In this document: one piece after another, positions 14,001-64,000 of the stretch
Numbering within the stretch: the stretch's first letter is position 1
Layout of the letters: every line of letters begins with the position of its first letter
Assembly (NCBI RefSeq): GCF_052425735.1
Contig: NC_135759.1
Location: 5,456,001-5,520,000, forward strand
Reading direction: 5' to 3'
From: Oculina patagonica
Taxonomy: Eukaryota
Length of the DNA: 64,000 bases
Program-made: the position numbers and the translations under genes
The notes under the pieces: generated by a model
Database searches by the model: none
Told to the model about the DNA's origin: nothing
Seen by the model: only the letters and a program-made list of their open reading frames with translations

Positions 14001-14856
14001 ATCGAGACCCGGCGACCTTTTAAAACAATTAAACGAAGCTCATTGTCCAGTGTTTACAATACCCTGGCGTTTTGTAGCCCCAGGTCCTTATGTTTAATTG
14101 CTTATTGTGTTTAATCTCTTTGACTTTGCCGCAAAACTAATAAAGTTTTATGAAAAGCAAAGAAGCAATCGCGCGTGAATTGGTGGTCCATTGTTTTACA
14201 TTTCTTCAGTTCTTCATTTCTTCATTTTCGGCAGAACCCATTCTTTGATGTTCTTAAACACTGCCCTAACAACAAGAGTCACTGCATGAAGTCCACGGTA
14301 TCGGATCTTTATCTGTCGTTCGAAACTTCCAGTAAAATGAAGTGATAGAAAGAGCATAAAAACTCCTTTATATTCACCTGAAAATGCCCGGGTTAAATGC
14401 AGTCTTAAGTTAAGTTTAATTCGTTACAATTAGTGAGGACCCTTAGACTTGGTCAGAATGCATGCACCCAAATGTGACTAGCTCTGCCTACACACTCAAT
14501 GATAAAATAAACCTTTTTTTTTTCACAAGGCCTTTTTGAAAGGGGTTAGACGTCGGTATGTCTACTCAGTAAATGTGGCTGAGACTGACTACAACTAAAA
14601 TCACTCAGGGTGGACTTGTTCTTCAGTTTAGTCCTGGTTGAGACTTACATAAATGAGCACCTCTTCTCCAATTGTGCTTACAGCAATGAAATAGGAATTC
14701 TTAACCTTCACAGCTACCGGTAAAAGTTCTTGTTGAACCTACAGTAGATACAATTTAAGCTATCAGTTTAGTATTTATGTAAAAAGCTTGTAACGTATTG
14801 ATGAAATATACCACAAGTATATTGTATATATCCACGGGGAAAATGTTTGGCCTCGT

Positions 14857-15130
14857 GGACACCGCATGGTCTAGTGGTCAAGGCATTAGGCTTGAAATCG
14901 GGATATCCCTGATTCGAAACTTCGGCTTCAACAGTATATAGGTGAAAGTGCAACTCTGAAATGCCAAATTTCACCTTCTAGGCTATACAAACAGGGTCAG
15001 TCTTTCTGCACTAGCTAGGATATTCTTACTTAAACAGTACTAGCTCCATTAAGAACATCTGTTTGTTTATGTCGGTGTCCACATTTAGCACTACAATGCT
15101 TATTAATAAAAGCGATACCTAAATAAAGTG
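14857..15130 (+). mobile_element. Degenerate tRNA-derived SINE (paralog at ~43360-43570)
   Basis: A-box-like tggtctagtggtcaagg and B-box-like gattcgaaact; ends near aataaa. Confidence 0.5.
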
Positions 15131-15337
15131 GATCAATTGTTATTTTGTATTTGAGCTTACAATATGTAGTCTTGCTGAATATCTCAGCATAAATAATTGA
15201 ATATTACATGCTAGCCATTTTTTGTGATCAATTCAGCTATTTAAAAAAACACAGAGATAGTAGCTTTACACCTTTTTGCACCTGTCCGTAAAACAAAGCC
15301 TTCTATAAAGTGACGAAGCTTAAGCTCTTGGCGAAAC

Positions 15338-15516
15338 TACAGTCAACTCTCGCCTTGCGGACACCTCGCTATTGCGGACGCTCGCTATTACGGACAAAAT
15401 CCAGATCCCCGGCGTAAGAAGTTTTACTGGAAATGACTCCCGCTATTACGGACTCTCGCTATAACGGACACTAAACGACGCCCCGAGCGTGTCCGCTATA
15501 ACGAGAGTTGACTGTA
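15338..15516. mobile_element. TA-flanked MITE (Tc1/mariner-type)
   Basis: TIRs tacagtcaactctcg / cgagagttgactgta. Empty site gcgaaacta|gtaacaaaatc is present in the paralog near 43775. Confidence 0.85.
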
Positions 15517-15735
15517 GTAACAAAATCATATCACACACAATTAAATTTTAATTCCTTTTTCGCTTGGTGGCTTTTACCAAAGTTACAAAACCACTTGGTT
15601 GCTTGAACGGCATCAGAAAACTAACAGATCGTAAAGCAGGCATGCACGAAGGAATGTTTTTTCCAAATTGAAGCTTTGTAGCGATTTTTATAATCGAGTT
15701 ATTGCGAAAACAGAGCACGAAATAAGGCGATTATA

Positions 15736-16135
15736 CATCTACATCTATTTTTTATTAAGTCGGTAAAAGTCCATTCGGATATCACACCAACGTCTTAACA
15801 TAATTACAGTGATTTAAAATAGGTGAAAGACAATATATACATATATAAAAATGAACAATTCTAAAATAGGAAAGCTAAATTGACAACTGGGGGTAAACAA
15901 CTTAATAAATAAAAAAAATGAGCAAAGACGCCGCACGTACTTTCTAATCGCTACCTGGGTAATCGCGTAGTCCAGACTGGGAACACGCAAGAGAGACTCA
16001 ACAATCGCCGCAGGGAGTGCGTTCCAATCTCTTATGGTCCTCGGAAAATACGCGTTTTTCGTCGCTCTATGTTGCGTATGTTTGAAATTATGGCTGCCGC
16101 GAGTTCTGGATCCGTTATGTCTACTAAGATAGGAG
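15736..16135 (-). mobile_element. 5'-truncated LINE 3' end (CR1/L2-group)
   Basis: Translated motif YFPRTIRDWNALP, AATAAA and a short (GATGTA)-like tail. Absent from the paralog at ~43990. Confidence 0.65.
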
Positions 16136-17050
16136 CCATCAATATCATTCGCTTTCACTTTTTAGCTACGTCACGGACTGAACTCATCTTGAAAAAATTG
16201 GCTAGTTTTTTCGAGTTTGTCGTTCGTAATCCGTCTTAATCTCCGTCAGTCGAAACCATCCTTGGTTATTTTTGCCTTTTGGTGTTTTTCTATGTAAGAA
16301 AACAATTATTTCAAGGTTTCCTTCAATTTGGAAGTAATCAGAAAAATGACTTAAAATACCGTTCTTTAAGCCACACTTTTATCCCATACACCAATTATCT
16401 GAGAAACTTGCATTGGGACTAAAACGAGTGCGCCCCAATCATGACAGAAATGATGTTGCCAAAATGGGGACGAGTGGTCCAAATAAACGCCAGCTGCACA
16501 GAGGGCCAGAGTACGGTAGGAATAAACATATATTTGATTAGATACTTTTATCAGATGACACCGCCCCCTCCTCCCCGCAACCTCCCACCCAAAAAATCAG
16601 ATCAGGGCGCTTTGGCAGAAGTTTTCTGGGCTTCACGCTCTTCTGCAGTCAAATAATATTGAGGCTCAAAGCAGCAAAACGATAGAGTCGCTACCTCCAA
16701 AGTTTACAGCGATTTAATTCCAAACTTTAGAAAGCAAGTTCAATCTAAAAAGATCAGATCGATGCGCTCTACAAATGTGTCTTGACAACTTTCTTTGGTA
16801 AATTGTAATGGCAATTTATTATAAACGAGTTTGCTAGTTGTGAATGATGTATATAGTTTTTTGGTTTCTTAAGATTGATTTAAATAGTTTTACGTTATTT
16901 TATTATTTAATTTTCATTGTAAGATACTAGCAGTAAATGCTACTCTATAAATCCGAATGTGGAAATAAAGTTTATGTTATGTAATAAATCAGCCATAGAA
17001 TCACAATCCAAAGAGCAACTGACCAACTGCAAAACATTATAAAATTGAAT

Positions 17051-17498
17051 TACCGTAATGATTCGATTTAGCGCCCGGGGCGCTTATTTACGTTTGGCAC
17101 CTCGAGGGAGGGCGCTTATTCGGGACAGGGCGCTTATTTAATTTCTTGAGAAACAACCAAATGTATCTAACAATAACAGAAGCTGTAACAGTTAGAAATT
17201 GTTTAAAGTTCAGTTACTTTTAAAATAATTGTTCATTTTAGCAGTAAATATATACATGAACTGTACGGCGAACGGTGAGGAGTTTATCTAGTTGACGTCA
17301 ATGACTTCAGTATGGGCAGTTATCCACAATAGGGGCACTTATTAGAATAGGGGTGCTTATAAGAACGGGGGCGCTAATTAGAATGGGGGCGCTTATTGGA
17401 ATAGGGGCGCTTATTTACAAAAACACATTCGAAGGGGGGCGTTTATTGGGAAGGGGGCGCTTATTTGAAGGAGGGCGCTAAATCGAATCATTACGGTA
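17051..17498. mobile_element. TA-flanked MITE with internal ggggcgcttatt subrepeats
   Basis: TIRs taccgtaatgattcgatttagcgccc / gggcgctaaatcgaatcattacggta. Empty site gaatta|gtgatc at ~44715. Confidence 0.9.
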
Positions 17499-18223
17499 GT
17501 GATCATAGGCAATCACAGCCAGACCTTTGGCATAGAAGAGGCAAGATCTGGGAACTAGAACTAGAACATTTTAAAAAAATTGGAAGCACTGAAACGCTTT
17601 TCTCAATATTCTTCATCGCGTATTCCTTGAGAAAAATAAATCTTTTTCAACTTAATATATTTGTTTATAATTTTGGGTCACTATCTAGACGTGTCTCGTC
17701 TTGCCTCTTGCTAGCTACGGCCAGACATAACGCTGCACTAAGACTGCAATACTTGCCATTTCATATCTCAGTATTACATATATAGCAAGAATTTTGGGCA
17801 AAATACAGTCGCGAATAGATGTCTATATTTGCTATATTTCAAATGTGAGAAAAGCGATACGTCCAATCAGCTTCGCGTACAGATTTCTTCACATGTGGAA
17901 AATATGACCAATATAATCAGCATCTAGAGTGGAACGACCCAACCAACCAAAGCAAGAGAATTGAAATGGTGCCCAAATGGTTGAAAAAACAGCGAGCGGC
18001 ACTTTGATCCCGACGACAGTTCATGTTTTGAAAACATGGCTACACGTATGGAAGGCAAGCAAACAGGAACTCGCCAAGCAAAACCAAAAGAATACGGTAA
18101 TAAGATGATAACGATACGAATCATTCTTCAAAGGCGAAGCAAGGACAAAAGTTAGACAAAATTTATATCTACCAAAATTGTTTACATCTCATTGCAAACT
18201 TAATTCTGTGTTACTGTTTCAAA

Positions 18224-18514
18224 TACACCTAATTGCAATAACGTTGTCATAGAAAAAAGTAAAAAAGAAAAAGGTAAATAGGAATTAATTAGCTTAGTTT
18301 CATAACTGGTAGCATTTACAGAAATTTCACGAGTTTTATCTGCACTTTTTAAGTCCACATTTTTATGCTGTAACAAGATTAATTGATTTATTCGTATTTT
18401 AAAGCATTTTGAGGCCATTTGTACAAATAAATTTCATGCATGCGCTTAATTAATTCCTATTTGACTTTTTCCTTTTTACTTTTTTCTATGACAACCTTAT
18501 TGCAATTAGGTGTA
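18224..18514. mobile_element. TA-flanked MITE, ~65 bp TIRs
   Basis: tacacctaattgcaataa... / ...ttattgcaattaggtgta. Empty site tgttactgtttcaaata|t at ~61900. Confidence 0.85.
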
Positions 18515-18586
18515 TGTCATTTAAAAGACATCATTTCCAACAACACCAATCATCGAAAACAAACTGAATTCCGCTGAATCGTTTAA

Positions 18587-20662
18587 AGGGACAGTCTCGC
18601 GGCTCAGTACATGTACAAGCTATATATGACGCAAGCAAAATCACTTCCATTATTTATAGACCAATCGGGAGTGATTTGTCAATATGCAAATCGAGCGCGT
18701 AATTTCCCGTGTTGTAGAACTTTCGCGTCAGCTGGTCAACCGACTTATTCAATCGAATCTTTTCACAATTTCAAAGCTCATGCTGTAGTGTGTACATGTG
18801 CTTAAGGAAAGATTGGAACAAATCGAATGTTCGTCCTTGCAAAAACACACGGCGAATTTTGCACTGCTTTGTTTATATGCCCGGAATGATTGCTAAGAAG
18901 CGTCAAAACGAGATAGGATTTCCATTTTCCTTATTCTTTAAAGCTTGTACATTCAACGCTTCTGTTATAATGGATTTCTCTCAAACGTGATGATAAATCG
19001 ACTAAAACACATCAAAAAGCACGTTCAATTTTGAGATTCGCGAATACAATCGCGAAAACATCGCTGCGGACGTGAGATTTCTCAACTTATGCCGTGATCC
19101 AAAAAAAGTATACCTCCATCAGCTTGTTTCTATATGGTATCGACAAACACTACCGCTTTATCTTGCTTTACAAAAAACTTTAAAGTCTTTGTGTAGTGAG
19201 TAAACAATCTGTTTTATCGGAATGTTTGTATCTCACACATCAAAACACTGTTCATACCCAGACATTCTACAATTATGACTGATTTCCACAAATAATGGAT
19301 TCCTTTTGTACGCCACACAAGACCGCTTTGCACCACACCAGATTGATCTATCTAGCTTTTTGATCTCCAAGGACTCTTACGCGTCCTGTCGCCGGTCGAT
19401 CACGATGTCACTCATGGACTCTGTATATTAAATGGCTTTTTCTTTGCCAAATCACTCACGGCATAGCTACTAACTATGCTCCCGGGTACTTGAGAAATAG
19501 CTGACTTCAGTTTGTCTAAGCGGAACGCCGGATTCACTCTAGTCCAGTCCCTGAACTCTCTCTTCCGCGCGCCTTTTTATAGGGGCTGAACCCAGGCGCG
19601 CGAAGAGAGAGTCCAGGATAACTTGCATGCGCATTCGCCAGTTTTTCCCCCAAAATTGGGGGCATATTTGGCAGCCGTTTGGAAAACGTGCGCGCACAAA
19701 TGACGAGTTCAACTACGCGACCGTGTACTAAAGCAGGATCCCCGGAATAACTTTAAAAAACCTAGCTTTTCAGTCAGTGTCTGCTAAAAGCTAACGGCCA
19801 AAACAAAAATCGCTATCCGTCAACTATTCCTAGTATTTTGTAGCTGTTTATTGAATTAGTTTTGGATGCAATTGAGCAAAGTTATTTTCTTGCATTTATT
19901 CTCGCGCTCGGTCGCGTTATTGAATTCGTCATTTGAGCGAGCCAATTTTAACCTAGTGCGCGTCCCAAGCAAGTGACGCCACACTCCTCGCTTCTGATTG
20001 GTTCGATCTGAGCATGCGCATGCAAGTTATCCTGGACTCTCTCTTCGCGCGCCTGGGTTCAGCCCCTATAAAAGGCGCGCGGAAGAGAGAGTTCAGGGAC
20101 TGCACTAGATTCACTCAGATTTAACAAACGATGGCTACTATGAATTCAGTGTACTTAATTTCGCGAAATGTCGGGCGCCGAATTTCGCGAGTATTAATTT
20201 TCGCCATTGCAAGAAAAATTAGAGCAAAAGTGTATTAAATTTCGCGATTTTGTCAGTGTTTTAATGATCAGTCGTCAAAGACTAAGGAACTACTGGAAAT
20301 ACACAAAGGTCTGGCTCAATGTATTTACAAGGAACCTGCAAACAGAGACATTGGTGACTGCCCTAAAGAGGTTTTGGCCAATTTACAAGCTCAAGAAAAC
20401 AGTAATCAGAGGAAGGCTACAGTCGAAACCAAGACGGAAAGTTATTTTTAAAGGTAGAAAGTTGGAGTTCCAAACATTTCAAATTGTTATTAACTTTTGA
20501 TATAATATGGTATTAATTTTCGCCCTTAAATTTCGCGCAATGTTATTTTCGCAATGTTAAAATCGCGAAAATCGCGAAATTTAGTACTCGCGAAAATAAG
20601 TAAGAATAAGGTATTCTGGTAGCTGTCACGTCACGCATGCGCATAACTGTGAAACCTTCGCT
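18587..20662. mobile_element. Kolobok-like non-autonomous element (TTAA, AG...CT ends) with nested insertions
   Basis: ttaa|agggacagtctcgcgg and ctgtgaaaccttcgct|ttaa form imperfect short TIRs. Confidence 0.5.
19540..20107. mobile_element. Non-autonomous TAG...CTA element with 9-bp TSD (AcademH-like)
   Basis: ~95 bp near-perfect TIRs. TSD gattcactc at 19531-19539 and 20108-20116. Confidence 0.8.
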
Positions 20663-21326: not shown

Positions 21327-22134
21327 TTCCCTTGAATAAATTGGCATTACTGGTAAACTTTCAATTTGTGACAACACAAAAATGAAGGGGCTCGAGTAAT
21401 TTGCCATGTCAAAATATCGTTATTATTGTCTTAACTTGTAACTGACCCGTCAAATAAGGTTTTTTCTCAAAATTTCAGATTAATTAAAAAAGTAACAGAA
21501 AATTTTACGTTTCTATCTGGTTTCCTACCGAGGTGCCTTCCAAATAAACGAAATGCAGACAACTTAATTTTCAAAAATTACGGGGGATAATTCTAGACCC
21601 CCTCCCCATCAACAAGCACGCGCCTACGGCGCCCAGACCGCCTGGCAAGATCGCGCACACGTCACTCAAGCGAGCACCCGGACATCGACGTTCCTGCCTA
21701 CGGATCTGACTGGACCTCTTTCATTTATGTCTATAAATATACTGTCATACAAATGTATCCACTTCCCTTCACACTAAAAGGCAATATTAGAGGATACTTT
21801 AATGTGCGGTCAACACTTAGTGGAAAAGCACTTACCTGACACAATGACACGTGGTACAAGTGTTCCCTTCCCAAGTATCCTTGTAGTACAAATGTTCCTT
21901 TTCAATGTATTCCTGTGTCCCTGCAAAGTTTTCTCTGCCCTTACTGCCTTTGGGTACAAAAAGCTCAGAAGGCCGAGGCCGTCGCTAGCCTTAGCTGTTT
22001 TTATTAAGTAGTTTTGAACCAATCACATTACACGTTATATTACTTTGTTTTATTTCATAAAACATATTTTATTTTCTCGGACATTTCATCTTTGATGGGC
22101 CCATTTTTACAAGTGCACTTTGTGCTTTTGCTAG

Positions 22135-22254
22135 CTAGTTATTCTTTTTCTTTTCCAGGCGTTGTAGCTTTGCTAGGTTTTGTTTCAAAGTGGTGTTGTC
22201 TGGATCAAGCTTCGCAGCAATCTCATAATGATGTCTTGCTTCCACATGTTCACC
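22135..22254 (-). CDS. TMTC1: TMTC1-like terminal exon
   Basis: ctttacag|GEHVEARHHYEIAAKLDPDNTTLKQNLAKLQRLEKKKNN*. Minus-strand AATAAA at ~22050 and ~22000. Confidence 0.85.
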   Translation of the reverse strand, partial: GEHVEARHHYEIAAKLDPDNTTLKQNLAKLQRLEKKKNN

Positions 22255-22631
22255 CTGTAAAGAACGGTTAAAAGCATATGACGAACGTCAGTAGGTCGAA
22301 TATTTTGCCTATTTTAAGTTTAAAATGTAAATTTAAATTCAAAAGTTTCATTATTCCACTTCTTATAGCGCAGCGGCTTTTTTTCAGTGCAAACAAACTT
22401 ACTTTGTTCATCAATCGGTTTTTTCTTCTTGCTTACACATTATGTGTCAATAAACAAAAAAGAAACAGACAAACAAACAACAAAACTAAAAAACTGGAAG
22501 GTGTTACCGTATACATATTGAAGTTAAGGCTAAAATGATTTTAAACTGCACTTTGATTTCATTTTGTATTTTCCTTTGATTCAGATTTATAACCATAACC
22601 CTTAAATAAAGAAAAATACAAATCAAACTAG

Positions 22632-24746
22632 TAGTCAGGTCGCTTAGCGCAAATTTTTGGAGAAATCGTTACACGGTTGATAAAAGCACCAAAATTTGCA
22701 GAATGATTCTTTAAAGACTATTAAATAATTTTATCTGTGGCTCCACCTGAAATTTTTCCTGCAATTTGCAAAATTTGCTAAACACTTTGACCACGTACAA
22801 ACTCTCAAGCACCGCTTCCACGCCATTTTGAATCGATTCAATGAAAGTGGGACAGAAGGAAATATTTCTCTTCTCCGTAAGTAATTTGCAGTTTTATGCT
22901 TAAATGTTGCAAAAATATATATAAATTAAAGACATTGCTTAAGTTTTCGCTAACATTTTATTTTTTAGATGCAGTATTCTAAAATGTTTATTATGGTTAA
23001 TTATGCGCTTGTCGTTTGTGGCCGCCGAGGGATGCGGAATATGCTTAAAGAAGCCTTGAAGAAACGAGATTACACAGAGGACTCACAAATTTTGGTCAAG
23101 GCAGCTTCAAAAATAAGAAAATACATTTTCAGCCACGAGGCATATAAATTTAATAGATCGTTTCCAGAAAATAGTCAAGAAGCTTCGTTACCATCTAGCC
23201 TCAAAACCTCAAAGATAAGCACGAGTCCCAAGCATGCCTTACCGTTGGCAGCCTATTGTCTACAATACTAAGAAAAAAATAAAAGGAATCCGATACAGAA
23301 ACAAGGCACTTTTAGGAGCGTGAACCGCCTCTGCCTGTCTACTGATTGACTTGAACACACACAGATTGACGAGATGCAAGCGGAACATCCAGCATTTACA
23401 CCAGCTGGGAATTTCTATTTCCCATGACCGAGTCACACAGCTTGACGAGTGGATTGCAGAAGCCATGTGCGAGCACTTTGACGAAGACGGAGTTGTATCC
23501 CCTGCCTGCCTGCTAAAGGTCTGTTCACTGTTGGTGCCTTAGACCACCTTCAAAAAGCTCTTTTCATGGTACCGGCATCAGTCTCCTCCAGTTTCCAACT
23601 GAAAACCAACCGGGTATGAGTATACCACCAGTTACGATTCCTCCATCGGTACCTAGATACCTCTCCGCCATTGTTCCACGCTATGTCTGGTTGTAACACC
23701 ACATCCACTTTTAGGAGAAAGGACAGGCATTTTTAAAGAGGAAACAGAAACACTTGCCTATTTAGCCTCCCATCCGATTGAGTCCCTTGATGCAGACTGT
23801 GAGCACTTCCGAAAAACTGAACGGCTGGTTATTATCGTTTATGACAAAGAGAGTTCGTCCTTGTCCCTTAACCAAACTAGGATTTAACTTTTCTGTCTTA
23901 AGAACGTTCACTGACAAGATGCCACCGACGGACAATGCTTTTCTTTAACGCACAAGACGGGCGTTCAATCTAGGACACTTGTACTGACGCTGTGCAAAAT
24001 ATCCCTTCACCGGACTTTATTTTAGCAGAACCACGATTTCTACACCTTATCGAGTTTCACTCTCCTTATATTTTTCATGTCTTATGTTCTCTTTTTGGGT
24101 CAAAGAAGTGGCTAGCCGCCCAATCCAACGCCACTAGATCCACCCCTGTCTAGGATATTACAGATAATTTTGCAAGCCTTAAGCCGCCGCATTTTTTTCT
24201 TTTGTCGGTAGAAACGACTGCGTGGGATGCTAGGGTAAGGGAACTTGAAAATCGCGTGGTTTTCTCTTCAATTTGCCTTATGGGTAATAAATATCGGGTA
24301 CTCTAATAAATGCCTGTGCAAAAAAGAGACGGACACCCCCTGAAAAAGTCTAATTGACCGCTTACGAAAGGGAACATTGCAGAACAGCCCTTATGAATTT
24401 ATGCAAATGAGCTAAGAACGCTCTTGTTTAAATTTCAAGAAAAATAAAAAAAAATTTGGATGGAGCTACGGATAAACTTAAAACCAGTATCGAAAATAGG
24501 CTGCATGCAAAAATTGGGGCTTTTATCACAAAATCTAATCGATCACTTACGAAAGGACATTGCGGAACAGCTTTTATAAATATATGCAAATGAGTTAAAA
24601 ACGTTCTTGTTTAAATTTCAAGAAAAAATAAAAAAATTCGGATGGAGCCACGGATAAACTTAAATAAGGTATAGAAAGGAGGCCGCATGCAAAAATTGGT
24701 GCTTTTATCACGCCGGTAACGATTTTTACGCTAACCGACCTGACTA
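22632..24746 (+). mobile_element. Internally deleted Academ (AcademX-type) transposon in the last TMTC1 intron
   Basis: TIRs tagtcaggtcgcttagcg / cgctaaccgacctgacta with 3-bp TSD TAG. Degraded transposase motifs HQLGISISHDRV, LFTVGALD, SSFHGTGISL, and XPG-like FHAMSGCNTTSTF. It sits inside an older palindromic MITE (~22515-24780). Confidence 0.8.
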
Positions 24747-24886
24747 TAGTTTAAAATCATTTCGACTTTAATTTCATTTTAAACTACAACATAAACACCC
24801 CAAACTAATACTGCGTTTTCTGTCACACAACCGTTTCTTCCTTTCAATGGATTTGTTCTGTCACACAACCACATATGTACAGTTAA

Positions 24887-25527
24887 GGGACCGTTCATTT
24901 TTTATGGGGTAGGGGGGGGGGGGCTGGTGGGATTTGATAGATAGTCACTGGTATATATAATGCCCCCCCCTTTTTCATCGAAAATTTTTACCTGGCCCCC
25001 CCTCAAAATCCTTTTTTTTGATGACCCCCCCCCCCCAATAAAAAAAAAAGAAAACAAACAAACAAAACAATAATCAAGTGAAATTAAAATATATCGATAT
25101 CGAGCCTTGTGACTAAAGAATGTATTAGTGTACAAAAATCACATCCCCAAATAACTGGCATTGCCTCAAATGTTTATTGTGGATGCCGTCTGTTAGTATG
25201 GTTTGTCCACATTTGTAACCAATAAGCTGTTGGGTTGAGTTGATGGCGTTTGGTACATAACAAAATAGGGGGGTCCGGGGGCATGCTCCCCCAAGGAAAA
25301 TTTGAATTTTCAGAACCTTTGGAATGTTATTTTGGGCATTCTGGCAATTTTTTTTTTTACTCTTATAGTAGCCTCTTTACAACAAAAGTATAATTATTTT
25401 TAGTGACCCCCTCCCCCTAACAGACCATATTTTTTTGGCTGACCCCCCCTTTGAAGCCAATTTTTTTCGGATGGCCCCCCCTCAAATCCCACCAGCCCCC
25501 CCTACCTCATAAAAAATGAACCGTCCC
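24887..25527. mobile_element. PIF/Harbinger-type MITE
   Basis: TIRs gggaccgttcattttttatg / cataaaaaatgaaccgtccc; TAA on both sides. Confidence 0.75.
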
Positions 25528-25578
25528 TAATGACGTTACTTTAATTCTTTACAATCCCGGCACAGGATCGTTACTAAC

Positions 25579-25656
25579 CTCAAGATGGAATATAACTCCA
25601 AGATTCAAATGAGCACTGGCGTGTTCTGGATCCAGCTGCACCGCCATCTTGTAGCT
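25579..25656 (-). CDS. TMTC1: TMTC1-like exon
   Basis: gatag|SYKMAVQLDPEHASAHLNLGVIFHLE|gttagt, phase 0-0. Confidence 0.85.
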
Positions 25657-26332: not shown

Positions 26333-26639
26333 TGTCGTTTATACCAAAAAGTGTTACGATCAAAATAGCGGCTGCATCTGTTGAGTTACCTCAGTGAATA
26401 TTTCCATAAAGTTAAAGGAGCTCCGTCAAGTACGACACATATCTACGAAAATGGCCATGTTTTTAATTTCTTTCTTAATGATCCGTCTAAATCGTACTTA
26501 GTCGTCGTTGGTATTTTCTTCCTTAAGAAAAAAAATTGTCATCTTAAGGTTTCCTTCGCTTTGAAAGCAATTTGAAAAAAGGACTTGAAACATGGTGTCA
26601 TATTCCTTTAATTAAGTTGGTTGATATAACTTCTCTTAC

Positions 26640-52389: not shown

Positions 52390-52550
52390 AATAGCCAAAT
52401 TTCGCTATTTTCAAATTCAGCCTAAAATAATAGACATCACAACGAGGCTCCGGGGAATAAACTCCACAAACTCTATAGTTTAGTCCCCGGAGCCTCGTCC
52501 TGAGGTCTATTGTTTTAGGCCGAATTTTAATATATCGAAATTGGGCTTTT
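52390..52550. repeat. Palindromic MITE
   Basis: aaattcagcctaaaataatagacatca...gaggctccgggga is mirrored by tccccggagcctcg...gtctattgttttaggccgaattt. Confidence 0.7.
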
Positions 52551-53139
52551 CGTTTTGCTGTGAGCATGTTTTGTTTTGCGATAAGAAATTCAGTTTAACC
52601 GTCAGCGATTTAATTTTTTTGCACCTATAGGGCGCCTTATACTTTAAGTGCTTTGGCCGCATATTTACCAGAAAGGAAACATTGTAAACTCCTGTTAAAA
52701 TTAAATGCGGGAGCTTCGCTTTTAGGGTTGCTTAAATTTATATATTTAGTTTCGAATTCAAGAAGTTAGAAATCCAAAAACTGTCGACAAAGCATGTAAA
52801 CATTTCTTAGGCCATTTTGAATTCATTTTCTAAGGGCAGGAAACCAATTTGAAGTCAAGCAGAACAAATTACCAATTCATTCTCCCGCCTCACCTGATGT
52901 CATTTCTAAGGTTCGGAGCAAAGTTAGAATATTAATGTTTCGAGCTAACGGCCGAGACGAACTATTAATATTAGTGAACTTTAGAAAGAAAAAATATGGA
53001 TGTCGTACATATTCATGTCATGTCTTTCCAAATCTGCAGAACATAGCCTGCCGCGGCCGCATTCTTTGTTTTCTATAAATAAGCTAGAGGCTGCTAGACG
53101 CAAGAAATTATTTCTAACCGCCTTATGACAAAAAAGTTG

Positions 53140-56100
53140 GTTGGAATTCTACAGTTGACTGACGTCTTCCCTTAATATGTCGTTATTAATACTATTACGG
53201 AGCAATGCTTAACGCACAATGTTTTGAACTAACAACCGTGATATCTTTGTTTGTTGAAGAGTCAACGCCGATTGATATCGATCGTGACTGAATCAGCGTC
53301 TATGCTGCACACCAAATTTTGTTCGAATTGGCCGAGAGAAGGCCAAATATTCTTTTGAGGTCATTCATGATCAACGAGAAAACTGAATAACCGATGATAC
53401 GGCACTGCCTTAATTTGCTGCAAAATTAATTTGGAGCCGGAGACCTTAACTGACCCATATTAACTATTCTAAACTGCAAATATATGTTCGGAATTGTGTT
53501 TTATCTCTTATTTATACGTAATTAAACTGCCTGGTACTTCATAGTACACAACTTTATTTACAAAAACGTGCTGTGCGAACTATTACCAACTCAGACTATC
53601 GAGAACATTCTGCCTCCTTATTTGCTAAACTGGGCATCTTAGATATCTTCCAAGTCAATGCATTGCAAATAGCTAAATTTATGTTTTACTATCATAACCA
53701 ATTATTGCCCCCGATGTTTCTCAATTTGTTTTCTACTTGTAGTCAAATACACAGTTATGACACAAGAATAGCCAAGTGTTATCGACCACATCACTGTCGT
53801 ACAAATCTAAAGCAGTTTACAATACTTTTCCAGGGCCCAAAAATTTGGAATTCTCTACCAGAATCGATCACTGGCCGGTTCGAGTAGCTTCTCTTCTTTT
53901 AAGAAAAAAATGATTAAATTTCTAATAAAATGAGTCTGAAATTGGCCTAGCTGCACATTCACAGCGAAATTACTAACATATTGCTAACCCGAGGTGGCCT
54001 CCCCCATAAGCCTTGTGGTTTCTTTGAGGTCTCATCGCCCTATCTATTTAGTTATTTTGTACGTATTAATTTCTAAAGTGGCAAATAAAATGATGATGAT
54101 GATGATCATGATGATGAACTAAGACACACACGGTCGCCATGACGAGAACGCTCACAATTTAGCTCAACTTATCTGCAGCGAATCAGTTCAAGATTGCACG
54201 AAGAAAGAAGAAAGGTTTCGTCAGTAACTTCAAGAAACTGGAAGCCTTACCTTGAAAGACAAGGAAGCCGCTAGAACCCTTCCTTCAAACTCTTGATCCA
54301 ATGTAAGAAAGCAACTGCAAGTTAATTGCCTGTAGCGAAGTAAACGCGACGTGCCAACAAAGCGGAAAAAGTTCAAGATAAATGGCTCATGGACGCAGGA
54401 AATTTTTCTATCGCCTTATCACAAATTAATTTGGTGGGAATGCGGTTGTTTATAACAAAGGGCCCGACAGACCGCTGAGAATTTTAAAGTTGTTTGTCCT
54501 TGTTTGAGCTCTTAGCTCTGAACTATTGTCCGGTTTCCATCGGTAGTAATATTTGGGTTTGTCTAATGACCATGATTTGGACCTTCGATCCATCAAGGTT
54601 ATAGTTTCATATTTTATTAGTTTTAGTTCTTCCGAATTTTTTCAGTGGCCGTTTACTTTTTATTTTGGTTTTTAATGTAGGTTTGTTTGTATTCGCTCTC
54701 TTAAGTCAGTCTCAGAATTGACTCAAGTTTTCCGGGGTCACCGAGATTCGTACCGAAATATGTGTACAATTTAGCTATATCAACGGTTGATGAACCTTCG
54801 AGGTTGTAGTCAGTAGTCAGTAAAAGTCAGTAGTTAGTCAGTCATAGCTGAAGACAATAAAGAAGCGAGAGAGAAGATTTGCGATGGAGTCCTGGCTACC
54901 TCTTGCACAGCTGATTGCCAAGCATTTCAACACAATCCTGAAATTGAACTTACAACCATGATATCTTTCTATGTCGATGAGCAAACGCCGGTCAATATAT
55001 ATCGATCGCGACTGATTCAGCGTTCTACAGATTAAACTTCCCTGAAACAATATCTCGTCATAACCTCGAGTTCCATACCACCATTTATACCACCATTTGC
55101 CAGATATACTGCACACTAAATTATATTCGCATTGACCGAGAGTAGGCCGAATATTCTTTTGAGGTCATCAATTCATGATCAAACAGTGATCAACGTGAAA
55201 ACGGAATAACCGATGATACGACACTGCCTTTATTTGCTGCAAAATTAATATGGAGCGGAGACCTTTACTGTCCCATATTAACTATTCTAAAATGCAAATA
55301 TATGTTCAAAATTTTGTTTTATCTCTTGTTGATACTGTAACTGCCTGGTACTTCATAGTACACAACTGAGACACACACGGTCGCCATGACGAGAACGCTC
55401 CCAATTTAGCTCAATTTATCTGCAGCGAATTTCAAGATTGCACGAAAAAAATATTCAAGGTTTTGTCAGTAACTCTAAAAAGCTGGAAGCCTTACCTTCA
55501 AAGACAAAAAAAGCCGTAAGAACTCTTCCTTCACTCTTGATCCAGTGCAAGCAAGCTGCTGCAAGATAATCGCCTGTAGCGAAGCAGATGCGACGCGCCA
55601 ACAAAGCAGAAAACGTTCAAGATAAATGGATCATGGACGCGGGAAATTTTCTTACCGCCTTATCACAAGATTAATTTGGTGGGATTGCAGTTGCTCTAAC
55701 TGCTTTTTTTTCAAAAATTGTTATCGTTATTAACATTGTTTCGGAGCAACGCTTTAAGCACAGTTGTTATAAAGCGTATATATTTTTTTACAATTGTGTG
55801 ATTTTACTTCATGATCAGTTGTTTATAATTCTGTAGCTAACGTGAGAATCTTGTGATTTAAAGGACCGACAGCCGGCTGAGAGATTTAAAGTTGTTTGTC
55901 TTAGTTCATTAACAGCTCTTAGCTCTGAACAATAGTTTCCATCGGTAGTCATGTTTGGGTTTATCTACTGACTTTGGTTTGACCTCCATATTTAGGTTCC
56001 TGTTATGGTTTCGTCTTCTATTAGTTTTAGTTCTTTCGAATTGGTCATTGGCCGTTTACTCTTTATGTTGGGTTTTGATAAAGGTCTGTTTGTATTCGCT

Positions 56101-57110
56101 TTCTTAAGTAAGTCCCAGAAGTGTCTCAAGTTTTCCGTGGTCACCCAGATTCGTACCGAAATATGTCTACAATTTCGCTATATAGTTAATGAACCTTCGA
56201 GGTTGTAGTCAGTAGTCAGAAAAAGTCAGTAGTAGGTCAGTCACAGCTGAAGACAATAAAGAAGTGAGAGAGAAGATTTGCGATAGAGTCTGATTACCTC
56301 TTGCACAGCTGATTGCCAAGCATTTCAACACAATCCTGTAATTGAACTAACAACCATGATATCTTTCTATGTCGATGAGCAAACGCCGGTCAATATATAT
56401 CGATCGCGACTGATTCAGCGTTCTACAGATTAAACTTCCCTGAAACAATATCTCGTCATAACCTCGAGTTCCATACCACCATTTATACCACCATTTGCCA
56501 GATATACTGCACACTAAATTATATTCGCATTGACCGAGAGTAGGCCGAATATTCTTTTGAGGTCATCAATTCATGATCAACGTGAAAACGGAATAACCGA
56601 TGACACGGCACTGCCTTTATTTGCTGCAAAATTAATTTGGAGCGGAGACCTTTACTGTCCCATATTAACTATTCTAAATTGCAAATATATGTTCAGAATT
56701 TTGTTATATTTTATCTTTTATTGGTACTGTAACTGCATGGTACCTGGGTACTTCATAGTACACAACTAAGACACACACGGTCGCCATGGCGAGAACGCTC
56801 CCAACTTAAATCCTGCAGCGAATTTCAAAACTGCACGAATTATAATATTCAAGGTTTTGTCAGTAACTTTAAAAAGCTGGAAGCCTTACCTTGAAAGACA
56901 AAAAAGCCGTAAGAACCCTTCCTTCAAACTCTTGTTCCAGTGCAAGCAAGCTACTGCAAGCTATTTATCGCCTGTAGCGAAACAGACGCGACGCGCCAAC
57001 AATGCGGAAAAAGTTCAAGATAAATGGCTCATGGACGCGGGAAATCTTTTTTCCGCCTTTAAGTTATTGCAAGATTAATTTGGTGAGATTGCAGTTGTTC
57101 TGAAAGCTTT
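53140..57110. repeat. Three tandem copies of a ~1.25-1.4 kb unit
   Basis: Shared landmarks, e.g. gaagccttaccttNaaagac at 54241, 55486 and 56880, and gacacacacggtcgccatg in each copy. Copies 2 and 3 are nearly identical over ~54840-55140 / ~56240-56540. Confidence 0.9.
53552..54116 (+). mobile_element. LINE 3' fragment inserted in tandem copy 1
   Basis: LQKRAVRTITNSDYREHS...QGPKIWNSLP, AATAAA and an (ATG)n tail. Flanked by aact; absent from copies 2 and 3. Confidence 0.8.
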
Positions 57111-57821
57111 TCTAAAATTCCCGAGGGATACTCAAAAACGTTTTGCACGGGGAGGCTCCGCCTAACAGAAAAGGGTTCTCCTTTCGTATACCTACATAGG
57201 AATACTGCAACCCCGACATAAAATCGCTCACTAAGAAGAAGGTAAACTCTGGATTTTGCCCGAGACCTTTCGTTGAAGCAGTTTTTTAAAGGACAGTAAA
57301 TGCCACCGTGTGCTTTCTGAAATTATTTAACTCCTTGCGGCTGGCATTAATGGGAACGTTAAACTTTCCCTGTGAATATATAGCTGGTGTAATAGCTGAT
57401 CCGCCGGACTCAGACAGAGAGAAAGAGACGAGAACCTTCGTGGTAACTGCAATAGTCGCGGAAGACAGGATTTCGACGTTATTTTCACGCTGACGCGAAA
57501 AGCAAGAAGGAGCACCACGCACAAGAAACCCTCAAATCTCAAAGGTCACGCTAGCGCTGTGGAGTGTCGAGATGTTGCCCTATCAAAGTCTGGTACCTAG
57601 AGTACTTCACAGTGCTTCACCACGACGGAAGTGGCCAAAAATGACATTTCAAATCTGTTATGTCTGTTTTATCTAGACAGTGTCGACGTTTGCAAAGATC
57701 GAAAACGAAAAAAAAATGAGATTTTCACGAAAAAAACAAAACAAATAATTCACGAGTCACGCAAAAAAAAATGTATAATAGCTTGGTACCGGAATTGTTT
57801 AACGCAAATAGTCATGATTAT

Positions 57822-57900
57822 GGAGGCGCGGTGGCCTAATGGTTAGTGCGCCGGACTCCGGATCAAGCGGTCCGGGTTCGAGCCCTGGCTGGGGTTACTG
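57822..57900 (+). mobile_element. tRNA-derived SINE head
   Basis: ggaggcgcggtggcctaatggttagtgcg...gggttcgagccc (A and B boxes). Confidence 0.6.
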
Positions 57901-58548
57901 TTAGTCACTGGAAAACTCACCTCATCACCATTGGCGAAAATGCCGTTTATTTAAAAATTGGTTCATGCTTAAGCGTACACTATCGAATCATGGTGCACGC
58001 GGGAAGTTTGGAGAGCACTCAAGAAGCTCTTGTGCACAACTAAAAGTATGAACCAATTGTTTTATAACATTGCCGGTAGAAATGTAGATCAAAACCTGCG
58101 CCAAAAACTCGCGCGAGTGAAAAAAAAATCTGGCGAAGTGATTTGCCCACGCGATCAGCGTGCACTATTGGATTTTATGCACGCTCACGTACACTGAATT
58201 TGATTGCGAGGCTCTTCTAGCTATGTTGTAATTTTTAATATAAAAAATGGCATGATGCTGGTGTAATGACCACGTCGGACATTGTAGACAAGGAAGGGAA
58301 GTTATTTAGTCTGAATTCAGGAAGAAGCAGGTGTGGTAACATACCAACTTTGTTGTTCTCTGAAAAGCGGTACCTCTTAGGGACTAACTGATGAACTACG
58401 TAGGGCGTCTGGTACCTCTGGGCTACTGTACATTTTATAGTTTCTTTCTCATGGCTGGATTACATTATCATGAATTGTGCATAAACATCCTCTTTCGCCA
58501 TTTGAGAATAAACCAGTTACAGAAGGAAATGAATCGTTTCGAAAGATA

Positions 58549-58651
58549 TGGATCGATTTCAATCGATCTATTTGGATCGATTTCAATCGATCGATTTTGG
58601 ATCGATCCGGATCGTTGCAGAATCGATCCGGATAGTCGATCTGGATCTTTT
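58549..58651. repeat. Left part of a GATC-rich minisatellite
   Basis: atcgatccggatc-type units; continues at 61487 beyond the inserted element. Confidence 0.7.
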
Positions 58652-58655
58652 TTAA

Positions 58656-61482
58656 CCCTTAGAATCCTAAGGTTCTGGTATTTTTTAAGCAGTTTTCTGG
58701 GCTTAAGCTAATCTGTCGAATTTCGTGATTGCATATAAGAAGCTCAAGTAAAAATGTGTGCTGTTTCAAAACACTGAGGGCTCAAAGTTTCATTGTGACG
58801 TCAGCATTCAACCGTTGCTTTCTTGGTGAGCGAGCATACGGGCTCGAATCTGGCGAATATTTCGTTTATAAGTGTTTTCTTCGAGTCATTTTCCACTGCA
58901 GAAGCCCCCAGGCTGGCATCATTAAGCTAGAATTCTGGGTAGAGGCAAACTTCTGAAAGAAACCAGAGGTGAGAGATGATTTGACGATGATTGGAACGCC
59001 AAAAACATTTGTATCTTTGGTTTTGGTCCGTCAATTATTAAGTGGATTAAAACCTTTTACTGTAAAATTGAAAGCTGTATTCTTAACAATGGCTGGTCAG
59101 GTAACTTCTTCCAGCCTCAAAGAGGTGTTAGGCAGGGCTGTCCTCTTTCACCATATTTATTTAAATTCTGGCAGCGGAGATATTGGCTTAGACAATCCGG
59201 AGTAACAGGAAAATAAAAGGTTTCTATGTAGACAGAAATGAAGTCAAGTTAAGAAAATATGCAGATTCGATGCAGATGATACTACTCTTATCCTAGACGG
59301 GTCAAAGGAGTCCCTAGTCGCAGCCTTACAAACTTTAGATGATTTCAGCAAGATCTCCGGCCTCAGGCTCAATGATAGTAAAACGGAAGCTCTTTGGATC
59401 GGCTCTAAGAGTGGGCAAGAAAAAAATTATGTACCAGGAAAAGACTTAAAATGGCCAAAATGCAAGGTAAAAGCACTTGGTTTATGGCTGTCAACCGATC
59501 CAGACCTGGCGATAATATTAAATTATAAAGAAAAAACTGAAAAAATTAGAAAGTTCTTAAGCTGCTGGCAATACCGTAGGCTCACGCTGCTAGGGAAAAT
59601 CACCGTAGTTAAAACACTGGCCGCATCACAGTTGGTTTATTTATTAGCGCCGCTGCATTCTAACCACCATGCTATAAAAGAAATAAACGACTTTTTCTAC
59701 CATTTCCTATGGAATGGTAAAGGTGACAAAATAAAGAGAAAGATTATGATTAACGATCCTGGAAATGGAGGTCTGAAAATGATTGATCTCTGCTCTTTTA
59801 ACAAATCTCTCAAAACAACTTGGGTAAAAAAGTACCTGGACACGACCAACAAGGGAAAATGGAAACTCCTCTTCGATATGGAACTTAAGAACTATGGCTG
59901 TGAAAATCTCTTCCGGTGTAACCTTAATGTTAATGACACAAAGAAAATGATAAAGGTCACGGATCCCTTCCTCAAGGAAATATTAGAATACTGGGCCGAA
60001 ATCAATTTTGAGCGCCAAGCAACTTCTGAAATCAATTTTCGCGAACAGAGTTTATGGTTCAACTCTTTAATAAGGGTTGATAACAAGCCAATGTTTTTTA
60101 AGGATTGGCTTGAAAAAGGTATAACGAAAGTTAAACACCTTCAAAGGACGGAAAACAACGGATTTCTGTCCCTTAATGATCTTGCTTCAAAGTACGACAT
60201 AAAATTACGTTCTCTCAGTTTCTATGGGTTATTATCAGCTGTAAAATCCCTTCGAAAAACCGTTACCGGAGCTGCTGAGATTAGAGAAGGCAACTCTGAA
60301 ACACTTTGCGACAAGATTATAAAAAGTCAAAGACCAGGCCCGTTAATTTACAAAAAGCTTATCAGTGCAAAAGGTCTAACCCCGAGCAACAGCCAAAACA
60401 AATGGCTTCAGGATTGCAATCTTTTAGATGAAAAAACTACTTTCAACTGGGAACAAGCGTACCTCATGGCACCATGTTATACCAAAAGCACCAAACTGAT
60501 CGAGTTCCAGTTTAAACTTTTGCATAGGCGCATACCAACAAACAAGTTCCTATTTAAAAATAGGAAGAAAAGAAAACGAAAATTGCACTTTTTGTCACAG
60601 TGCCTCAGAATCATTAATTCACCTTTTTTGGTCGTGTAGCGTTACATCCTCCTTTTGGAAAAGGGTGACTGACTGGCTTCAGGAAAACCTCTCGATAACA
60701 GGCGAATTCACTTTATTGAATACAACAGCATTGGGCCTGAGGCCGGATCCTCATTCAAAATATGCGCTTCAATTGAACTATGCTTTGTTGCTAGCGCGGT
60801 ATCACATATGGAAAAACATTTGTATCGAAACATGGTGGTTCATGAGTTAAGTTGTCTCTCTGGCCGTTCTGTGGATGGATTCCGAGACCTGCCAAGGCAA
60901 TTTGGACAACTTTTGACTTCCAAAGAATGCGTTCGGTGCAGTATTTTGCTGGTAGGATTGGGTGGCTCGACACTTATAAAAAATGTATGAAATAGAGGTG
61001 AGTGGACTAGCATTTCGCCGAAACGGCTGTATTACCCAGTCATTCCTTTCGGTCACCAATAAGGAAATTACAGGTTTGCAAGCATTGCTCTAATCGAATG
61101 GTAATTGCTCAGTCTGCTGAAAGATTGATGAGAAGTTTTCTTAGTGAACGGAAAGAAATAGGTTTGAAGTTTGCTGCAAATGTACACTTTTGGATTCGAA
61201 ATTATTTTTTCATTAAAAAAATTGGAGACAAAGATGTGCGTTTTTTGTTGTTGTCCCATGAAGTAGAAAACGGGCATTTTCGGAATTGTTGCAGAACAAA
61301 CAACCATATACAACGGCAATCTGGAGCTGTAGTCAGTTAGTTGGCTTTTAAAGCTTTGAAAATTATCACTTTGCCATAACGAGGGCTCATTACTATCAAT
61401 TGTCCAGATATGTGAAAGCTGCAGATTTTTTAATTACTGCCGGTATTTTCCACGCACATATGCGTTGTTAGGACTTAAAGGG
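58656..61482. mobile_element. piggyBac-type element (TTAA, CCC...GGG), decayed
   Basis: ttaa|cccttagaatccta and taggacttaaaggg|ttaa. The restored empty site gatctttttttaatcgaccc matches an uninterrupted repeat unit at ~61631. Confidence 0.75.
58990..60815 (+). mobile_element. L1/Tx1-group LINE fragment (RT pseudogene) nested in the piggyBac-type element
   Basis: FGFGPSIIKWI, RGVRQGCPLSPYLF, ADDTTL, FLWNGKGDKIKR..GGLKMID, FQFKLLHRRIPTN; several frameshifts. Confidence 0.88.
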
Positions 61483-61486
61483 TTAA

Positions 61487-61730
61487 TCGACCCGGGCCGT
61501 TTCTGAATCGATCCGAATCGTTTCCGAATGGATCCGGATCGTTGCCGAATCGATCCGGATCGTTGCCGAATCGATCCGGATCGTTGCCGAATCGATCCGG
61601 ATTGTTGCCGGATCGATCCGGATCGATCGGGATCTTTTTTAATCGACCCGGATCGTTTCTGAATCGACCCGGATCGTTTCCGAATCGATCCGGATCGTTT
61701 CCGAATTGATCCGGATCAATCCGAATCGAG
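61487..61730. repeat. 21-bp minisatellite (gatccggatcgttgccgaatc)n
   Basis: About 11 degenerate tandem units; produces the DPDRFGN-repeat ORF on the minus strand. Confidence 0.85.
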
Positions 61731-63414
61731 CAGCACAGAAGCAGTAACTGTGACCTCATACCATCGAGAAGACTGTCAAATACGTCATATGTTAGCCAAT
61801 AGTTTTTTTTATTATTTTCCGTGTTACATTACATTACATGTTGGTTGCAATATTTTAAATCAAATTGCTATGGTGTTAGTCTATGTTACTGTTTCAAATA
61901 TTTCATTGAAAGAAATTATTTTCAACAACACCAATCATCGAAAACAAATTGAATTCCACCGAATTTAAGGTGGCTCCGTAGTTATTGAAGGCGCACTCGT
62001 CCTGTCAAACTTTTCTTTATTACTTTTTCGGCTCTGACGCGATGGCTGAAATTTTGGAAACATTTTCGTCTATCATTCAGTAATATTTAATTTGATTGAA
62101 CTGGGGAAAATATTGTTAATATTACTTGTGTTTAACTTTTTTGACAAAATCGCATCCAGTAAAAAAAAAAAATTGCTGATATACTTCTGCTAAGTTTCTT
62201 GAAACAAATAAAAGCGGAGCTCCAGCGCGCTTCGCGCGCCAGTGGAGTACCATGGGGTAAGAAAATTTGGTAAACCCAGGAAGCCAAAAAACTGGTTATC
62301 GAGTGAGCGCACGCGTTTCTCTCTGGTACAGACTCTCGGAGAGGGGAAGGGGTTCACAAGGCAACCCGAGTGGGGGAAGGAGAATGCCATCTTATCATAC
62401 CCCAACGAACGTTAAGGTTAACGTCGGCTTGTTTCTTTAATATTGAACAGCCATGTTATGATCAATTGCCAGCTGTCAAAACAAGGTATCCGCTGACCAG
62501 TATCACTTGTCCATATTGCGGGTTCAGGTGTGCAGCTCATTGACGTCATGTATTTTTAGAAGCTGATCGCTGACCAGGTTATTGTTTTCCGTTGTATCGC
62601 GGGATCAAATCATACTTTTTTGTCTAGGGAAATGATAGGATTTTGAGCGCAATTTCTGCGATTAGAGTGACGATTTCTTTCTGCAATGGATCTTTCTTGA
62701 GTAGTAAACGTTAAATAACTTCAATAACAGTATTTTCAATGAGAGTATTTTAACAAAATTTTTAGAACCATAAAATAAGTGTGGAGCTCCGCTTTTAGGC
62801 TTGGCTAAATCTATATATTATTCACTTGACACATAACATAGCCAAGTTTCAGGAAAATCGTTGGAGCAGAAGTCCGGAAATACTAAGGTGATGTGAATTC
62901 AACTCTAACATTCTATTGAAAGTTTCTATGCTTGACGCTCGTCGACGAAACAAACCACGAACCCCAATTTTCGCAAGAAGCCTACCCAATGTTTGCTTAA
63001 TCAGAGTGCCTAGCCGATTGTTGATCGTGTGAACCGTTAAAAAGTATTCGCTAGTTCTGTAAACATAAAATGCTTGAAAACCTTCTCCAAACTCCAAAGT
63101 TGCGTTTTGCAACATTTTTCAAAAAATTATTCCGCAGTTTTGTGTCAAACTCTTTTCACCTGAATTTCAAGGTACTCCCATATTTTTGCATCGACTTTTG
63201 TTGCTGCCGTGCTGTAAGTTAGATATTGTTGTTGAGATTGTACGCTACTTCGCGACTGATCTCTGGCGAAGCAGGCGAGTAATTTTGATGATATAGTTAT
63301 GAATACGAAATGAGCTTGTACGTCGCTTATTCTCATAATTTGCATCTTCATAATGGGCGTCAGTGATATGCGCGTCAACCACCTCAGAAGGGGAGGATCA
63401 AAGAATTTACCCTA

Positions 63415-63755
63415 TACCGTAGAATTCCGGTTATAAGCCCTGGGCTTATACAACTTCGTAAGGGGTTTTGGGTGGGCTCATAAGCGGAAGGGCTTATATC
63501 CGGGAGGGCTTATAAGCGGAATGAAAAAAACGTTTCGAAAAGTGTCACGGGAGTATTGACTGAAATACGTTTTTAAGTTAAAAACGCATAATAAAGCAAC
63601 ATTTAGCCCTGTTCAGTACTGTCATCCGGTAGAGGGGGCCTTATATCCGGGGGGGCTTATAATCGGATGTATTTTTTTGTTTCCAGGTAGATGGGCCTAT
63701 AACCGGGGGGGCTTATAAGCGGGGGGGGGGGGCTTATAACCGGAATTTTACGGTA
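63415..63755. mobile_element. TA-flanked MITE with gggcttata subrepeats
   Basis: TIRs taccgtagaattccggttataagccc / gggcttataaccggaattttacggta. Confidence 0.85.
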
Positions 63756-63857
63756 TGTGTACCGTTTATAAAAATTGCAAGCACTAATGCAACTTGTTGC
63801 TGCTAGTGGCGGTTTGTGTTTTCGTAATCTTGTTGGCTGGACCTATTCTATCCATGA

Positions 63858-64000
63858 CTATAAGTATTCTGTCATACAAATGTATCCAGTTGCCTTCACA
63901 ATTAGTGAAGAAACACTTATCTGACACATTGTCATGTGATACAAGTGTTCCTTTCCCAAGTATCCTTGTAGTTCAAATTTTCTTTTCAATGCATCTGTAT
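63858..64000 (+). repeat. Paralog/allele of 21730-21905 (3' flank of TMTC1-like gene)
   Basis: ctgtcatacaaatgtatcca...tacaagtgttcc.ttcccaagtatccttgtagt is shared by both places. Confidence 0.85.

Follow-up and report, generated by a model that had tools for sequence, protein, structure and literature searches.

In a stretch of 64,000 nucleotides from the coral Oculina patagonica (C2:5456001-5520000 in an assembly of 529 Mb in 1951 contigs), called the window here, a scaffolding gap of 500 N separates two divergent versions, A and B, of the same DNA. Both arms carry the 3' exons of a TMTC1-like gene, and B carries in addition a gene for a probable TIR-domain protein that is absent from A (Table 1). 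We consider it highly probable that A and B are two haplotypes of one diploid coral locus and that the apparent tandem repeat is a heterotype false duplication in the sense of the Vertebrate Genomes Project (PMC9516828; PMC8081667; Purge Haplotigs, PMC6267036). The artefact is of an already known and well-described kind; the deep haplotype pair is less ordinary. The two old haplotype classes are real; numerous transposon insertions and a 17 kb interval with the TIR gene distinguish them. An earlier note, made from the letters of the window alone, had proposed a heterozygous bubble scaffolded in tandem. This proposal was supported by the branch points at the ends of the arms, the half depth of both types in another sequencing run (X1), the shared left flank, the single-copy state of the flanks and the selective constraint on the TMTC1 exons.

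The sequence right of the gap was compared by blastn with the sequence left of it, including 60 kb downstream and 20 kb upstream of the window. This revealed 17 anchors, all collinear and on the same strand, that run from A 14755 = B 43256 through A 37933-37972 = B 73134-73174, with E-values as low as 0, by which chance is far exceeded. The landmarks that the earlier note had recognized in the same order on both sides of the gap were thereby borne out, and the repeat proved larger than could be seen there, the matches carrying on beyond 64000 to about 73174. A second terminal exon of TMTC1, predicted to lie just beyond 64000, was indeed found at 64220-64339, with a stop codon. The homology between A and B extends to the final bases of contig 1, i.e. 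the repeat stops at the gap, which is the sole run of N in the window and in 80 kb of flanking sequence. The two sides of the gap are discontinuous: they overlap each other's interiors and do not abut. Open reading frames (ORFs) listed over 37958-38527 were discarded as not real, being translated through the N run. A megablast of a shared anchor against a phage collection, which is irrelevant to this locus, gave no match.

Both contig ends at the gap coincide with sites of transposon insertion. The first base right of the gap is base 1 of a B-only foldback element of 4.8 kb, i.e. a transposon terminus. This element has two arms of about 1.9 kb with 90-98% complementarity, and GTGTCATGGTCAG is present at both termini. 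It is directly followed by TTAA (43256-43259). At this left branch point A reads ...ACAATTTAAGCTATCAG and B reads ...CATGACAC / TTAAGCAATCAG, the slash marking the junction. At the other end, contig 1 closes with 42 nt of TMTC1 intron (minus strand), which lie directly upstream of the e8 acceptor and align with B 73134-73174. B continues from there into a second foldback of about 2 kb, whose site is empty in A (contig 1 finishes with ...CCAGTAATTAAAC; the B sequence is ...CCAGTAATTAA / GAGGCTG...CAGCCTC / TTAAACGGG), and the final two bases of contig 1 (AC) are the bases that follow this foldback in B. The second foldback has at least 40 scored copies, spread over many chromosomes, with which it shares 98-99% identity, and one of its arms matches the other in reverse at 93-95%; judged by these likenesses the family looks very young and is probably still mobile. 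It had been noticed before that the right contig starts on the first base of a foldback for which the left side has an empty TTAA, and that the left contig ends about 40 bp past another insertion. Both observations agree with the present data, as 14755-14758 is uninterrupted and 42 nt separate a 6.8 kb A-only element from the end of contig 1. The start of contig 2 and the end of contig 1 are thus the points where the haplotype paths split and rejoin, as is expected of a bubble of which both arms have been kept.

We infer the following behaviour of the assembler, and also that the haplotypes match beyond the right branch point. Left of 14755 and right of about 75156 the haplotypes would be nearly identical and would have been collapsed. 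Between these positions they would have been too different, and both arms would have been retained. Contig 1 would then consist of the common left flank and arm A, and contig 2 of arm B and the common right flank. By joining these contigs head to tail with a gap of the conventional 500 N, the scaffolder would have produced an apparent tandem repeat of 23-30 kb and a false partial copy of TMTC1.

Alternatively, the repeat could be a true tandem segmental duplication, with A followed by B on each chromosome, the junction in the gap and A as a truncated extra copy. The copies do lie head to tail in the same orientation on one scaffold, and their divergence (dS 0.2; 9.7% in non-coding DNA) would suit old paralogues better than alleles. 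Besides, exon e8 of A is broken by the 6.8 kb insertion and exon e4 has a GC splice donor, as a decaying copy might. However, such a duplication would require its junction to lie, by coincidence, no more than 2 nt from one TTAA site and on the first base of another insertion, and a true duplication has no reason to land in this way on two sites of heterozygous insertion. An origin of a real duplication by unequal crossing-over between transposons on its flanks was considered and rejected, because A holds the empty site of the left boundary and because the two foldbacks of B differ in their termini.

The coding sequence also argues against a truncated extra copy. Exons e1-e8 were delimited in both arms by conserved frames and splice sites. 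Their lengths are equal in A and B, without a stop or a frameshift in 313 codons, and the arms differ at 63 of 939 nucleotides and 24 of 313 residues, which corresponds to a synonymous divergence (dS) of 0.203, a nonsynonymous divergence (dN) of 0.036 and a ratio of the two (omega) of 0.18 (Nei-Gojobori). Three coral assemblies from the ENA, L026 (ERZ25073751), L027 (ERZ25071802) and L030 (ERZ25067872), served as outgroups; dS of the TMTC1 3' exons is 0.51-0.55 to the nearest, L030, and about 1.0 to L027. When the differences were polarised by L030, 14 synonymous and 8 nonsynonymous changes were assigned to the A lineage (omega about 0.16; neutrality rejected, p 2.5e-5) and 19 synonymous and 13 nonsynonymous changes to the B lineage (neutrality rejected, p 4e-6). 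A mean omega of 0.6 in the A lineage, as expected of a fragment that had been dead since the split, was rejected as well (p 1.4e-5). These substitution counts indicate that both lineages have been under purifying selection and that A is no dead partial copy. Since a truncated 3' fragment of a gene cannot stay intact by selection, A was carried within a functional, full-length gene during most of the time since the split, like an allele.

The two lesions of A can be placed in this context. The 6.8 kb element, which has inverted termini of 521 nt (arms 31202-31722 and 37375-37895), interrupts the 51 nt exon e8 after 8 nt; in B this exon is uninterrupted (73091-73141). Its insertion is probably recent, as all other exons of A are still open, and the A allele of TMTC1 that carries it could be a null allele or could be spliced without this exon. 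The splice donor of e4 is GCAAGT in A (26871-26873) and GTAAGT in B (about 66648-66650); the former may belong to a functional GC-AG intron or may be a splice defect. A Pfam scan of the ORFs of the 6.8 kb element, the foldback and the repeat filler of A gave no match, and a set of 5.8 billion proteins searched with the e7 ORF of A and with the TIR exon contained no near-identical match; entries from this genome and its close relatives may be missing from that set.

The sequences on either side of the repeat are single. No second copy of the left flank (4000-14754) was found in the assembly, short similarities at the homeobox level only. A direct search with the right flank was swamped by the high-copy foldback family, and the copy test was therefore performed with the DUF1736 exon of this TMTC gene (window about 80101-80319). 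It occurs once in the assembly, the other three matches being other TMTC paralogues. The doubled part of the TMTC1 gene comprises the eight 3' exons only.

Logan contigs of four runs, each from a different study, were placed on 13000-18999 at 80% likeness. The depths are mean word depths of contigs from samples other than the assembled individual. The non-A letters listed for the block are B's letter at the aligned position in 13 of 15 cases. In run X1 the left flank had a depth of 41.3-43.7 (single contigs), A-identical sequence 21.6-25 and the other letters 24.1-27.5, A and the other type together amounting to 50.6. X1 departs from the reference at homozygous sites of the flank and is therefore not the assembled individual; it looks like an A/B heterozygote in which A, B-like and flank stand at 1:1:2. 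Runs X5 and X15, each under another species label, gave no A type. The depth of the left flank was 85.6-96.8 in X5 and 63.9 in X15, and that of the other letters 96.8 (single contig 13728-15339) and 63.9 (single contig 13000-15339), respectively. These contigs cross 14755 at full depth with B letters only and without the 4.8 kb foldback (38475-43255). The common left flank is thus adjoined by A within contig 1 and by B-like sequence in X5 and X15, which implies that A and B are allelic in position. In X2, labelled coral metagenome, the left flank had a depth of about 51, A-identical sequence 37-59 and the other letters 17-22.

A fixed duplication predicts that A, B and flank have the same depth, and a polymorphic one that B equals the flank in X1; neither was observed. 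The half depth of each type in X1 and the B-like sequence beside the left flank of X5 and X15, with no A, add to the evidence of the breakpoints and the exons, and a true tandem duplication is considered very unlikely. Its polymorphic variant, in which some chromosomes have flank-A-B and others flank-B only, would explain why A is missing in X5 and X15 and why half depth is found in X1. However, it predicts a B-like depth of about 43 in X1, where 24-27 was observed and A and B-like together make up the flank. As it meets the same problems of constraint and coincident breakpoints as the fixed duplication, we give this variant hardly any credence.

More than two structural types exist, since a contig of X5 runs from 16349-17050 directly into 17497-17722, collinear with A, yet has B letters further left. 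The same joint of 17050 to 17497, which lacks a miniature inverted-repeat transposable element (MITE) of 446 bp, was present in X5 and X15 and, within X2, in the minor type. The A type was seen in two independent samples and the B-like type in at least three. At 13082, 13125 and 13443 in the left flank the same non-reference letter was present at full depth in all four runs; the reference letters are either private to the assembled individual or consensus errors.

Some points weigh against two haplotypes of one locus. A dS of 0.2, roughly 40% of the distance to another coral genus-level assembly (L030), is very high for alleles. The half-depth figures come from the Logan contigs of another sample and not from the assembled individual, and in these contigs no sequence joined 14754 to the foldback. 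The junction of left flank, TTAA and foldback was not found by an exact-pattern search of the whole assembly either; a collapsed flank would leave no such junction, so that this negative is uninformative and gives no positive support. In X2 the ratio of A to B-like is about 2-3 to 1 and not 1 to 1; this coral metagenome may be a mixture of sources.

The divergence between the haplotypes is graded. Only 4857 nt of the 23-30 kb arms can be aligned, with 9.7% substitutions; the remainder of both arms is mutually unalignable and mostly transposon-derived. A and B differ by 3.5-3.8% at the left end (14755-15339), by 11-19% in the middle (A 18.5-22.5 kb) and by 3-4% in the final 270 nt before the e8 insertion, so that divergence is highest near the indel and the 3' end of TMTC1. 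Differences in the flank among samples are about 0.7-2.3%. The gradient favours an old polymorphism, and varying constraint along the block could contribute to it. It also bears on the possibility that the arms are allelic and A stems from another lineage, by recent introgression or as a second genotype or species mixed into the colony. A-type words at high share are confined to samples S1 and S2 among eight studies, only the B-like type occurs in the runs labelled as two other species and the high dS could be taken in the same sense. Old erosion by recombination explains the graded divergence better than a recently acquired block does, and the 1:1 ratio of A and B-like in X1, with a homozygous flank, is the pattern of a normal heterozygote. 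We regard an origin of A in another lineage as rather unlikely; it touches the origin of the haplotype only, and the tandem repeat is an artefact in that case too.

Many of the differences between the haplotypes are insertions. Clean empty sites in B had been claimed for three MITEs of A. They were confirmed for those at 15022-15082 and 15340-15514, and the site of the third, 15724-16135, is less clean. The MITE at 15340-15514 has a word depth of about 1e5, and loose ends were found at 15338 and 15516 in all runs. The statement that B lacks a long interspersed element (LINE) fragment of A held in that 3 kb at 22518-25543 are A-only; the LINE identity was not confirmed, no Pfam reverse-transcriptase signal being found there. 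Between the anchors 17052/44715 and 18513/61899, A has unrelated repeats of about 1.46 kb (17052-18513), more than the figure of under 1 kb given earlier, and B has 17.2 kb including the TIR gene (44715-61899), in keeping with the earlier estimate of about 17 kb. Sensitive blastn of 44716-61898 against A detected no homology.

The probable TIR-domain gene starts with an ATG at 50706. Its TIR exon lies at 49997-50166 on the minus strand (the TIR-like exon was listed as 49869-50195, minus) and, when tested alone against TIR_2, gave an E-value of 7e-6 and 27.0 bits, below the curated cut-off of 28; related database proteins have precomputed TIR_2 or TIR matches. This exon is unique in the assembly, matching itself only. 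The Trp/Gly-rich C-terminal exon has one paralogue, at C2:21336507-21336668 (plus strand; 54% identity over 55 residues). In tblastn the related database protein P0003 (JGI), which spans the join of exons 2 and 3, matched B only. In all three outgroup assemblies (L026, L027 and L030) the TMTC1 3' exons are followed by a six-exon TIR gene in the same orientation, with open and conserved exons, and L030 also has part of the intergenic filler of B (52.7-57.0 kb). This order in three of three other corals implies that B is the ancestral arrangement and that A lost the TIR gene. Its conservation at dS of 0.5 to above 1 indicates that the TIR gene is old and constrained.

Other ORFs were noted in the B-only interval. 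A low-complexity Val/Met-rich (or Gly/Asp-rich) repeat lies at 50232-50573, within the first intron of the TIR gene. Another low-complexity tract, a tandem DPDRFGN-like repeat, is at 61475-61759; both tracts are probably satellite or transposon and not genes. An ORF of 335 aa in the filler (59632-60639, plus strand) had no Pfam match; we take it to resemble the C-terminal part of the ORF2 proteins of non-LTR (long terminal repeat) retrotransposons.

Table 1. Features of the window and of the adjoining sequence, in window coordinates. For anchors, the position in A is given first.
Feature	Position	Strand	Remarks
Left flank	1-14754		single in assembly; probably collapsed from both haplotypes
Homeodomain exon ORF in left flank	6992-7426	+	Pfam Homeodomain, E 9.8e-23
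Haplotype A arm, 23.2 kb	14755-37974		TIR-less intergenic stretch and TMTC1 3' exons e1-e8
Left branch point	14755-14758		TTAA empty site in A; lacks the B-only 4.8 kb foldback
Further A-only insertions	15022-15082, 15724-16135		empty sites in B
A-only high-copy MITE	15340-15514		TA target duplication, CAGTCAACTCTCG... terminal inverted repeats; clean empty site in B
TA-flanked MITE, 446 bp	17051-17496		terminal repeats; polymorphic among samples
TMTC1-like 3' exons in A	22135-31150	-	exon-by-exon alignment with B, splice sites, TPR Pfam matches
A exon e1	22135-22254	-	has stop
A exon e2	25579-25656	-	
A exon e3	26640-26750	-	
A exon e4	26873-27010	-	GC donor
A exon e5	28828-28972	-	
A exon e6	29725-29860	-	
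A exon e7	30424-30584	-	
A exon e8, distal part	31108-31150	-	
A-only element, 6.8 kb	31155-37932		in TTAA, duplicated at 31151-31154 and 37933-37936
Right branch point	37969-37972		empty TTAA of A, 2 nt before the end of contig 1
Scaffolding gap, 500 N	37975-38474		exactly between arms A and B
B-only foldback, 4.8 kb	38475-43255		contig 2 starts on its base 1
Haplotype B arm, 29.9 kb in total	43256 to about 73174		collinear anchors; window ends at 64000
B-only interval, 17.2 kb	44716-61898		TIR gene and transposon debris
Six-exon TIR-domain gene	45413-50706	-	once in the genome; six open exons; absent from A
Retroelement reverse-transcriptase ORF	46949-48589	+	in intron 3 of TIR gene; RVT_1, E 1.9e-23
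TMTC1 3' end in B	from 63834	-	B exons e1-e8 at 64220-73141, past window
Second B-only foldback, about 2 kb	73175-75151		past window; TTAA on both sides
Anchor	14755-15024 = 43256-43525		93%
Anchor	15083-15339 = 43523-43778		95%
Anchor	15515-15723 = 43777-43981		93%
Anchor	16136-16178 = 43996-44038		
Anchor	16214-16796 = 44041-44647		84%
Anchor	16989-17052 = 44656-44715		75%
Anchor	18513-18579 = 61899-61964		87%
Anchor	21707-21773 = 63834-63900		
Anchor	21813-22281 = 63898-64366		B side partly past window
Anchor	25544-26036 = 64863-65354		B side past window
Anchor	26502-27181 = 65770-66961		B side past window
Anchor	28791-29001 = 67778-67988		B side past window
Anchor	29717-30211 = 71093-71578		B side past window
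Anchor	30286-31154 = 72284-73137		B side past window
Anchor	37933-37972 = 73134-73174		B side past window

Heterotype false duplications can be recognized by a gap that separates the copies, by half depth and by haplotype-specific words (PMC9516828). The locus described here resembles them in that divergent haplotypes are neighbours on one scaffold with a gap between them, in the false partial gain of a gene (the TMTC1 3' exons) and in haplotype-specific words. The haploid-level depth reported here comes from contig words of another individual. The locus differs from the usual case in its divergence of 9.7% and in that about 80% is unalignable, far above what purging tools are tuned for. In corals, very old haplogroups were described at a sacsin-like gene of Acropora (PMC8626496). 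Two deep haplotype classes, more than one species label and a diversity far above that of the flanks are common to both loci. Unlike the Acropora locus, the present one shows presence or absence of a whole gene and many structural variants, and its A type did not appear in the runs with other species labels.

In nematodes, hyper-divergent haplotypes are rich in genes for environmental response and immunity (10.1101/2020.07.23.218420; PMC10682056). The coral block is similar in its local divergence of many times the background, its differences in gene content and its immune-type gene; it differs in being a single locus in a cnidarian outcrosser. The closest mechanistic analogue is RPM1 of Arabidopsis, a plant resistance gene with a balanced presence/absence polymorphism. 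As in RPM1, an immune-type gene is present in one class and deleted from the other, and divergence rises toward the deletion junction. In contrast to RPM1, the coral gene is not an NLR but combines a TIR domain with an uncharacterised C-terminal part, without a known pathogen link or cost of carriage.

For the assembly, this means that the reference is 30-35 kb too long at this position and contains a tandem repeat and a partial TMTC1 paralogue that are both false and would mislead gene-family counts, read mapping and the calling of single-nucleotide polymorphisms here. The artefact has at the same time accidentally kept a phased view of both alleles, which are about 10% different where they can be aligned and are set apart by about a dozen transposon insertions. 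It is possible, though on the whole doubtful, that they represent an ancient polymorphism, kept by balancing selection, for the presence or absence of a conserved TIR-domain gene, whose two classes would have split long before the present species and whose edges would have been eroded by recombination. Selection could then act on carrying or lacking the TIR gene or on the linked 3' half of TMTC1. If both classes occur at intermediate frequency, this would be an old balanced gene-content polymorphism at an immune-type gene in a cnidarian.

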